Source of the DNA: Octopus sinensis | Taxonomy: Eukaryota | NCBI RefSeq assembly: GCF_006345805.1 | Contig: NC_043001.1 | Location: 132,990,001 to 133,054,000 of the forward strand | DNA: 64,000 bases | Direction of reading: 5' to 3' | In this document: one piece after another, positions 28,701 through 33,468 of the stretch | Numbering within the stretch: position 1 is the stretch's first letter | Layout of the letters: each line of letters opens with the position of its first letter | Program-made: the position numbers and the translations under genes | Notes under the pieces: generated by a model | Database searches by the model: none | What the model saw: only the letters and a program-made list of their open reading frames with translations | What the model was told of the DNA's origin: nothing

Positions 28701-31700
28701 TAACGCCAACCACTCCGAGAGTGTAGTGGGTGCTTTTTACATGCCACCTGCACTGGTGCCAGGCAAGGCTGGCATCGGCCATGGTCGGATTGGTGCATTT
28801 TACGTGCCACCTGCACGGAAGCCAGTCGAGGCGGCACTGGCATCGGCCACGATTCGGATGGTGCTTTTTACGTTCCACCGACACGGAAGCCAGTCGAAGC
28901 GGCGCTGGCATCGGCCACGATTCGGATAGTGCTTTTTACGTATCTCCAGTCCGGGGGTCCTGGCATCTGCCGGGTGCCAGTCATAGGATTGGTTCAATTT
29001 CGATTCCGATTTCACTTGCCCTAACAGGTCTTCGCAAGCAAATGTGGAAGACAAAATGGAAATGTTGTCTGGACCAGCACTTGATGTTAGAACCATGTTA
29101 ACAAAACCCTAGGTGAAAAATATGTAGTGGTGTAGTTGTACATTACCTAATAACTCATTGAGGAATTGACAAGAGGGAAGCAACAGGTGTGTAATCATGT
29201 ACATTGACTCTTATACTAGCATGAGTCGAGAAGGGCAGAGAGCAGTAGATATGGTAGTAGTGGTGGTGGTGGTGGTGGTGGTGGTGGTGGTGATGTTCTC
29301 AGTGCTTTTTTTTTTTTTCCTCATTCTTTCTTTCTAAATAGCAGTAAAACATTGTCTGATGTGTTTCAAATTTATTTCTAATTTCAGTTATCCTTGGCAA
29401 GTCCCATTATGTATTGTACCATTTAGTATCTGCTTTACAACCCAGAATGCTTGTAACTTTTGATGAACAGTTGAAGCCAGTTGGTGTATCTGTCAGAGTA
29501 GGACAGGTAAGTTCCTATAGAAATATGAAGTTATTTTAATAAATTTTTCTTATGGATTTCTCTTGCCTCTGCAAGGGAAACATAAGGGAGACATGGTGTG
29601 CAAAAACACAGTCCAGATGTATGTGTGTAAATGAGATATGACATAAATGCTAAAAGATTAAACATTGGATCACACATTTTCTTTAATCATCATCATTTAG
29701 CGTCCGTTTTCCATGCTGGCATGGGTTGGACGGTTCAACTGGGGTCTGTGAAGCCAGAAGGCTGCATCAGGCCCAGTCTGATCTGGCAGTGTTCCTACGG
29801 CTGGATGCCCTTCCTAACGCCAACCACTCCGCGAGTGTAGTGGGTGCTTTTTACGTGCCACCTGCACAGGAGCCAGACGGAGCTGGCAAACGGCCACGGA
29901 CGGATGGTGCTTTTACGTGCTACCAGCACGGGGGCCAGGCGAGGCTGGCAATGGACACGAACGGATGGTGCTTTTATGTGCCACCGGCACGGAGGCCAGT
30001 CAGGGCGTGGCTGGCAACGGCCACAAATGGATGGTGCTTTTCACGTGCCACCAGCACGGGGGCCAGGCAAGGCTGGCAACGGCCACGAACAGATGGTGCT
30101 TTTTACGTGTCACCGGCATGGAGATATGGTATAATATTTTGCTTATTAGCTGGTATAAATTCTCATCACTTCTTTTTTATTTAGTTGACATTTATATAAA
30201 AAAAAACATTTTGATTAGATATAAACTTTTTTTAACTCTTCCGCTCTTTTTCTTTTATCACTAAACCTATGCAAGTTATGGGGCCTTATAGAATTTTGTT
30301 ACATCCGTTTACATTTTAAGCTCAAATATCTCAAAGGTGAATTTTGCCATTCATTTTCCCAAGGTTTATAAAATGAACACTAATTGAGCACTGAGATCAA
30401 ATAAATCTTTTCAAAATTTTGTGTCCTTGTCCCAGTGTTAGAAATTTTTATTAGCAAGATATCACAAGATATTGGGTTATTTGGAGTGTTTGGTATGTAC
30501 CATATTCTTGTCAGTAACATTGGTCAGTCCCCCTCCACCTCCTTTTATCTATAGTTAAGCCGTGTGGAGCAAAAGCAGGTTTTTAATTTAAATGATGTTA
30601 TCTTAGCTTTGCTGCACAACTTAATGGTACTGGTGAGATTTGAAATTATATCAAATTTCAAGTAGCAAAGGGAATTTGAATATGGTTTCTTGACCTGCTG
30701 GAAAGGAAGAACATGCTAGTTATAGCTTGAATGTCTTTGATCATAGTTTTGATCATTCAGGGTTGACATGATCATAAGCAGTAACAATAAAATATTAGTT
30801 TTATCATAATGAGATTTTCATGTCAATAAGCACCAGTCAAGTACTTTGATCAATTTTAATTGCATACAGTTCCCAGAATGTGCCTTAATTAATTTCTGAA
30901 TTACAATTAATGTTTTGAATATTGGTGTATTGTAGGTTCACAATGCAGTTGAGCCCATTCTAGTTTTTTTTGTTTTTTTAGTGCTGTGAAGAGAAAATGG
31001 GTAATACATTGTATAAAGAACACAACTCTTGTTGCTTGGGTACCTATACAGAAACTTTAATTTTGAGCTTGTTAAGCATGGGTACAAACCCTCAGAACTG
31101 TTTTTATTTCGGGGTTTTTGGTTGTGGTTTTTTTTTTTCCTGTAATATCTTATTTTTACAAAGAGTAATTCTTTAATTTTATTGCAATTTCAGGCAGTAA
31201 ATGTCGTTGGTCAGGCAGGCAAACCAAAGACCATTACAGGCTTTCAGACACATACCACACCTGTACTGCTGGCATATGGAGAAAGAGCTGAGTTAGCAAC
31301 TGATGAATGTATCCTTTTCATGTTGTATTCACATATTTTCACTTTTTTGTTGGGTGGGTCTTTTTTGGTTTTTGTTGTTTTTACAGCAACCCCTTTGATG
31401 CTAATAATTCTACTTTGACAGGTAGCTGACCTTAGATGTGTATTCAGCTGATTGCCCCTTCTTTGAGTATTTTCAGTTAAGTGTTTAAGAGCAAGCGTGC
31501 AAGAAGAAAAAACAACCATGCACTGACATTTTATGAAAGCTACATGTTCCATGTTCAAATTTCACCATGACCAACTTTACATTTCATGTGTGTTTAACCC
31601 TTTAGCATTCAGAAATCATGCATTATTTCAAAGCTTTGAGAGTTCAATAATGTGATTGTATATCTTTAGAAAGACATTCTAGGGTAGGTGAAAGAGGTCA

Positions 31701-33468: not shown

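Follow-up and report, generated by a model that had tools for sequence, protein, structure and literature searches.

Canonical U12-type GT-AG introns, as represented in the intronIC/IAOD, U12DB and MIDB collections, combine a donor of the form /GTATCCTTT with a branch site of the TCCTTAAC type located 10-15 nt from the acceptor, and the last intron of the PSMD2 (Rpn1) gene of Octopus sinensis resembles them on both counts. Minor introns have already been classified in thousands of genomes, that of O. sinensis included (PMC10639083), and 263 species are covered by MIDB (PMC11347168). Both O. sinensis and molluscs are reported to carry such introns, with a relative enrichment in molluscs, and phase 1 is the most favoured phase among minor introns (PMC10639083). 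Here we analyse a stretch of 64,000 nucleotides of O. sinensis DNA, hereafter the window, in which positions 31309-33400 very probably represent a true GT-AG intron of the U12 (minor-spliceosome) type, the last one in octopod PSMD2/Rpn1, as judged from the sequence signals at its ends.

The PSMD2 gene in the window

PSMD2 is represented in the window by 19 exons that extend from residue 103 (exon start 1674) to the stop codon at 33468-33470 and enclose 18 complete introns. The exons were located with a rough guide protein, which was used for seeding only; the junctions were subsequently adjusted, each to the GT-AG pair that preserves the frame, and database proteins and PDB sequences served as a check on the final model. 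The 781 amino acids encoded by these exons differ from the PSMD2 protein of O. bimaculoides by 10 substitutions (~99% identity over the aligned residues) and are 92% identical to the protein of Argonauta hians and about 68% identical to vertebrate PSMD2; the homology matches carry PF17781, PF01851 and PF18051. Window exon 5 (5839-5899) encodes 19 residues that are missing from the UniRef model of O. bimaculoides PSMD2 (886 aa) and are present in Argonauta and in other PSMD2 proteins, a comparison by which the gene model of O. bimaculoides has probably overlooked or skipped this exon.

The donors of introns 1-17 are GTAAGT, GTGAGT, GTTAGT, GTAATA or GTATG, and their 3' ends are pyrimidine-rich. 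Among the 18 introns of the window, only intron 18 couples a U12-type donor with a CTTAAC motif near its 3' end. The search for a second U12-type intron at the other RTATCCTT sites (1462, 24538 and 32309 in the window, and several in the orthologous loci) yielded no candidate, none of these sites being located at a coding exon boundary. The partly included upstream intron that ends at 1673 was also considered and rejected, given that its counterparts in Argonauta and Haliotis are U2-type.

Other elements in the window are mostly remnants of mobile elements. Intron 3 of PSMD2 harbours, at 3972-4487 on the plus strand, a 172-aa open frame similar to PF13843 (DDE_Tnp_1_7, piggyBac-type transposase; E 2e-9), the match being confined to the N-terminal portion of the profile, which marks the frame as an intronic transposon remnant, and a 244-aa open frame at 56599-57330 on the minus strand matches zf-RVT (PF13966; E 1e-7), indicative of a retroelement remnant. 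Downstream of PSMD2, from about 34 to 64 kb, no conserved cellular gene was seen, and the region looks as if it consisted mainly of repeats, microsatellites (e.g. 53191-53782) and transposon fragments. A search of the whole window against Rfam at the gathering threshold returned 0 matches, hence no minor snRNA gene in the window and no RNA gene embedded in the intron, and ARAGORN identified no tRNA in or near the intron.

Junction and splice signals of the last intron

The last intron of PSMD2 occupies positions 31309-33400 on the plus strand (2,092 nt, GT-AG, phase 1). The penultimate coding exon (31194-31308; window exon 18), which belongs to the ungapped alignment with human PSMD2, ends with ...GCA ACT GAT GAA T at 31308, its last base being the first base of a Tyr codon, and the donor GTATCCTTT is located directly 3' of ...GATGAAT. 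From 31309 the intron begins with GTATCCTTTTCA, and it closes with ...TATTATGCCTTAACCGCAATCTATAG at 33400; the coding part of the terminal exon (33401-33470), which is likewise aligned with human PSMD2, starts with ATTTCCCTC, where AT completes the Tyr codon, and continues to the stop TAG at 33468-33470. Joining 31308 to 33401 splits the Tyr codon as T|AT, hence phase 1. The first polyadenylation-like hexamer past the stop is ATTAAA at 33689-33694, from which the end of the terminal exon would be predicted.

Several comparisons agree on this junction. Once spliced, the exons match human PSMD2 over residues 849-907 with no gap (E 2e-28 among proteasome structure sequences), and a 230-aa query from the same region matches human PSMD2 among the PDB sequences with E 6e-129. 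The same 31308|33401 junction is present in the annotated proteins of O. bimaculoides and Argonauta, and again in a 905-aa open reading frame on a 3.2-kb transcript-like contig from a related cephalopod.

The donor (31309-31317), which is the region for pairing with U11 and U6atac, agrees with the consensus /RTATCCTTT from +1 to +9 at 9/9 positions. The branch-point sequence CCTTAAC is located at 33382-33388 and offers two candidate branch adenosines, 33386 and 33387, which are 14 and 13 nt, respectively, from the last intron base at 33400. Over 33380-33388 the branch region reads TGCCTTAAC compared to the consensus TTCCTTAAC, with G replacing T two bases before CCTTAAC, a position that is weakly conserved. 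T and G predominate upstream of the branch motif, and the 3' splice site TAG (33398-33400) is preceded by the pyrimidine-poor stretch CGCAATCTA. The exon positions -2/-1 before the donor lack AG.

These results agree closely with the original prediction, which placed a U12-type 5' splice site and CCTTAAC just before the terminal TAG of an intron of about 2.1 kb, described the intron as packed with repeats and regarded the other 17 introns of the window as U2-type: both motifs are found exactly where they had been placed, the length is on target, 1,146 of the 2,092 intron bases (55%) belong to sequence that recurs at other places in the window, and the remaining introns have GTRAGT/GTATG-type donors with pyrimidine-rich 3' ends. 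The accompanying statement that there is no pyrimidine tract holds in large part only, the pyrimidine fraction at -3 to -22 being 0.60, the lowest among the 18 complete introns, and no pyrimidine run within the final 40 nt exceeding 4 nt (the longest runs of the other 17 introns measure 4-23 nt). Taken together with the conservation of the signals at the orthologous position described below, the features of the sequence support the U12-type interpretation as such. With donor and branch signals of full strength, the octopus intron is, on this evidence, a member of the strict 'minor' class; the acting spliceosome and the branch adenosine are what we infer from the same signals.

Orthologous introns across animals

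How widely is this intron shared? Starting from proteins that homology searches had retrieved, the PSMD2 loci of eleven other species were fetched, and in ten of them the rebuilt introns give a spliced translation exactly equal to the database protein. At the identical codon position and in the identical phase, an intron is present in the molluscs Argonauta hians (donor GTATCCTTTTCT, 3' end ACCTTAACTGCAATTCACAG), Haliotis asinina (donor GTATCCTTTGTT, 3' end TTTCCTTAACTGGTGTAAG) and Argopecten irradians (donor GTATCCTTTCTT, 3' end TTTCCTTAACCAGTAACAG), the annelid Owenia fusiformis (donor GTATCCTTTATA, 3' end ATTCCTTGACCTATATCTAG), the hemichordate (acorn worm) Ptychodera flava (donor GTATCCTTTCTC, 3' end CACCTTAACCAGACTTACCAACAG), the horseshoe crab Tachypleus tridentatus (donor GTATCCTTTGTG, 3' end TCTCCTTAATCATAATGAAG) and the starfish Asterias rubens (donor GTATCCTTTTAT, 3' end ACCCTTGACCTTGATTATTCAG). 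The donor GTATCCTT is identical in eight species, namely the octopus and these seven, and its combination with YCTTRAY at the identical position spans five phyla (Mollusca, Annelida, Arthropoda, Hemichordata and Echinodermata); in the orthologous introns, the branch adenosine of YCTTRAY is about 10-16 nt from the acceptor.

In the octocoral Paramuricea clavata, an intron is found in the same place (locus L008, 3720-4313; GTATCTTTTTGA ... TTTCTTAACGCTTGTATTAG) with weakened signals, the donor being GTATCTTTT and the branch site TTTCTTAAC, 12 nt from the acceptor. From its sequence, this orthologue may be 'minor-like' or drifting towards the U2 type.

No intron was found at the site in the sampled loci of Ursus americanus, the nemertean Lineus longissimus and Priapulus caudatus, in which nothing interrupts the last exon between QAVDVV, or a point still further upstream, and the stop. 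Many genomic open reading frames with vertebrate-like C-termini show the same arrangement: the pyrimidine tract and CAG of the upstream intron are followed by a frame that is open to the stop, with no intron at the site. The original prediction had taken no position on the type of the orthologous intron in other animals and had proposed its comparison across molluscs and vertebrates. The comparison is positive for the molluscs, with a U12-type intron in Argonauta, Haliotis and Argopecten, and negative for the vertebrates, where, to judge from Ursus and the vertebrate-like frames, the intron has been deleted. The neighbouring U2-type intron (Q|AVDVV) has its own distribution: Owenia lacks it and keeps the U12 intron, Lineus keeps it and has lost the U12 intron, and in Priapulus the whole PSMD2 gene contains 2 introns. 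From these gene structures, the intron content of the 3' end of PSMD2 appears to vary independently of the U12 intron.

The octopus and Argonauta introns are alignable only over about 20 nt at each end, and the alignment reveals no conserved elements inside the intron beyond these ends. Since the interior is unalignable, the constraint bears on the splice signals alone.

Age and loss of the intron

The phyletic distribution indicates that the U12 form was in place at least by the protostome-deuterostome common ancestor, and, because Paramuricea shares the intron site, an intron at this position appears to trace to the cnidarian-bilaterian ancestor, with later deletion indicated in several lineages, vertebrates included. 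Minor introns are ancient and have been lost mostly by deletion, a pattern that PSMD2 fits (PMC10639083).

Could the intron be older than animals? Arabidopsis thaliana RPN1 (locus L011, 5616-5718) has a U2-type GT-AG intron (GTATGTTG ... TTTTTGGGTCACAG) in the same short motif near the C-terminus, ELATE-K/E-Y. However, this intron of 103 nt is located 2 nt upstream, is in phase 2 within a Lys codon and combines a GTATGT donor with a T-rich tract. It could have arisen by conversion plus sliding or by an independent insertion. A pre-metazoan origin was considered on these grounds and rejected, given that a U2-type intron 2 nt away occupies a different position and lends it no support.

Inverted repeats within the intron

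The interior of the octopus intron contains two copies of a SINE-like interspersed repeat with a unit of 370-400 nt, placed in opposite orientation and separated by a loop of about 520 nt. The left arm occupies 31916-32275 and the right arm 32798-33143 (plus-strand coordinates), and the two are 88-96% complementary. Folded in silico, the 1,261 nt that include both arms are predicted to pair into a single duplex of about 360 bp (minimum free energy -740 kcal/mol), and it is plausible that the inverted repeats of the octopus pre-mRNA would constitute a dsRNA/ADAR substrate. At least 10 further copies of the repeat are present in the window, e.g. at 17980-18377, 34106-34494, 45291-45697 and 48116-48516. 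The second GTATCCTT of the gene strand, at 32309-32316, is found about halfway along the intron, immediately 3' of the left repeat arm, where there is no coding boundary.

Putative splicing pathway and the consequence of retention

If the intron follows the established U12 pathway, from which the steps below are drawn, the U11/U12 di-snRNP would recognise the donor GTATCCTTT through U11 and CCTTAAC through U12, the pairing of U12 with CCTTAAC bulging either A33386 or A33387. The U4atac/U6atac.U5 tri-snRNP would join next, and U6atac would take the place of U11 on the donor. The branch adenosine would then attack G31309, and exon base 31308 would be ligated to 33401, after the TAG that is 13-14 nt downstream of the branch. 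This ligation would restore the Tyr codon (T|AT) and bring the last 22 Rpn1 codons into frame.

In a conceptual read-through, 36 intron-encoded residues are followed by a stop at 31416-31418, and the last 22 residues, which belong to the RPN1_C domain, are lost. Transcripts that retain minor introns usually stay in the nucleus, where they are degraded, not translated. The truncation of Rpn1 by intron retention, as raised in the original prediction, would be only a formal reading of the sequence.

Alternative interpretations

Might the intron be an ordinary U2-type intron whose ends look U12-like by chance? The GT-AG termini are those of U2 introns as well, and a T-rich stretch precedes the branch motif, so that the idea deserves to be weighed. 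A chance resemblance is nevertheless exceedingly unlikely because both motifs are rare in the window: counting both strands, GTATCCTT is found at 2 of 7,655 GT sites and CCTTAAC at 11 of 128,000 positions (8.6e-5 per position). From these counts we estimate the chance that both motifs fall in register with the coding junction of any of the 18 introns at ~5e-6 (2.6e-4, times ~13 allowed branch-site positions at 8.6e-5 each, times 18 introns). The donor speaks against this reading in the same way. Of the 215 PSMD2 introns from the 12 genomes, all of which are GT-AG, 8 have an RTATCCTT donor, and each of these is the orthologous last intron. On a weight matrix for U2 5' splice sites that was built from the other 207 introns, the octopus donor scores 1.2 bits and the eight RTATCCTT donors -0.05 to 1.2, compared to a mean of 8.7 (sd 2.7) for those 207. 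YCTTRAY between -30 and -7 is found in all 8 orthologous last introns vs 5/207 of the other PSMD2 introns. Finally, eight animals, which represent five phyla, have kept both motifs at one position despite the complete divergence of the interior. A related proposal is that the intron bears U12 signals and is in transition from the minor to the major type, the major spliceosome carrying out part or most of its splicing in the octopus. It is in line with the described 'minor-like/hybrid' classes (PMC11347168), with the weakened signals of the Paramuricea orthologue and with the U2-type intron 2 nt away in Arabidopsis. We nevertheless regard it as highly unlikely for the octopus, where the donor matches the consensus throughout and the branch site has kept its CC, a combination that has been linked to use of the minor branch point (PMC11347168), and where neither an AG at exon -2/-1 nor a pyrimidine tract, the features that would favour U2AF and U1, is present.

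A U12-type intron might, in addition, have been kept as a slow, rate-limiting and regulated step for Rpn1 and proteasome output, a suggestion that supplements the U12-type assignment rather than competing with it. The intron site has been conserved among animal phyla at least since the cnidarian-bilaterian ancestor, and retention would lead to the stop 36 codons into the intron, with removal of the last 22 RPN1_C residues; both facts are compatible with such a role. Yet vertebrates, a nemertean and a priapulid have cleanly lost the intron and kept a conserved protein, which argues that the intron is dispensable, and a pan-eukaryotic survey argued that neutral processes account for most retention and loss of minor introns (PMC10639083), so that, on balance, we consider this role rather unlikely. 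An extended form of the idea, in which the conserved minor intron serves invertebrates as a dosage gate for Rpn1 and the duplex of inverted SINEs (~360 bp) tunes the efficiency of minor splicing in the octopus, we consider very unlikely. If it were true, the duplex could shorten the distance between donor and branch site by looping out 1.2 kb, or it could recruit ADAR or other dsRNA-binding proteins. A genuine U12-type intron excised by the minor spliceosome thus remains the interpretation that we favour.

Comparison with known minor introns

The PSMD2 intron has some practical value for annotation: a gene finder equipped with U2 signals only could misplace the junction and truncate Rpn1. It also provides a clean case of a minor intron of at least bilaterian age that was precisely deleted in vertebrates and is missed by human-centred catalogues, and it might serve as a marker in the reconstruction of minor-intron loss or as an endogenous reporter of minor splicing in invertebrate models. 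A search of the literature found no paper that ties PSMD2 or Rpn1 to U12 splicing or minor introns, a silence attributable to the lack of the intron in vertebrates; the intron itself is very probably already included in the genome-wide tables of minor introns.

In the six-class taxonomy of Olthof et al. (2024, PMC11347168), the 'minor-like' and 'hybrid' classes would probably accommodate the Paramuricea orthologue, whereas the signals of the octopus intron are too strong for them. Unlike the catalogued human U12-type introns, this one resides in a gene that is off the human minor-intron gene lists, for the reason that vertebrates have no intron at the site. In all other respects compared here, it is like the canonical U12-type introns: it has no pyrimidine tract, is in phase 1, is the lone minor intron of a housekeeping gene whose many other introns are of the major type, and occupies a deeply conserved position. 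The last intron of PSMD2 is a textbook, ordinary example of a well-known class of introns, and it leaves what is known of the mechanism unchanged.
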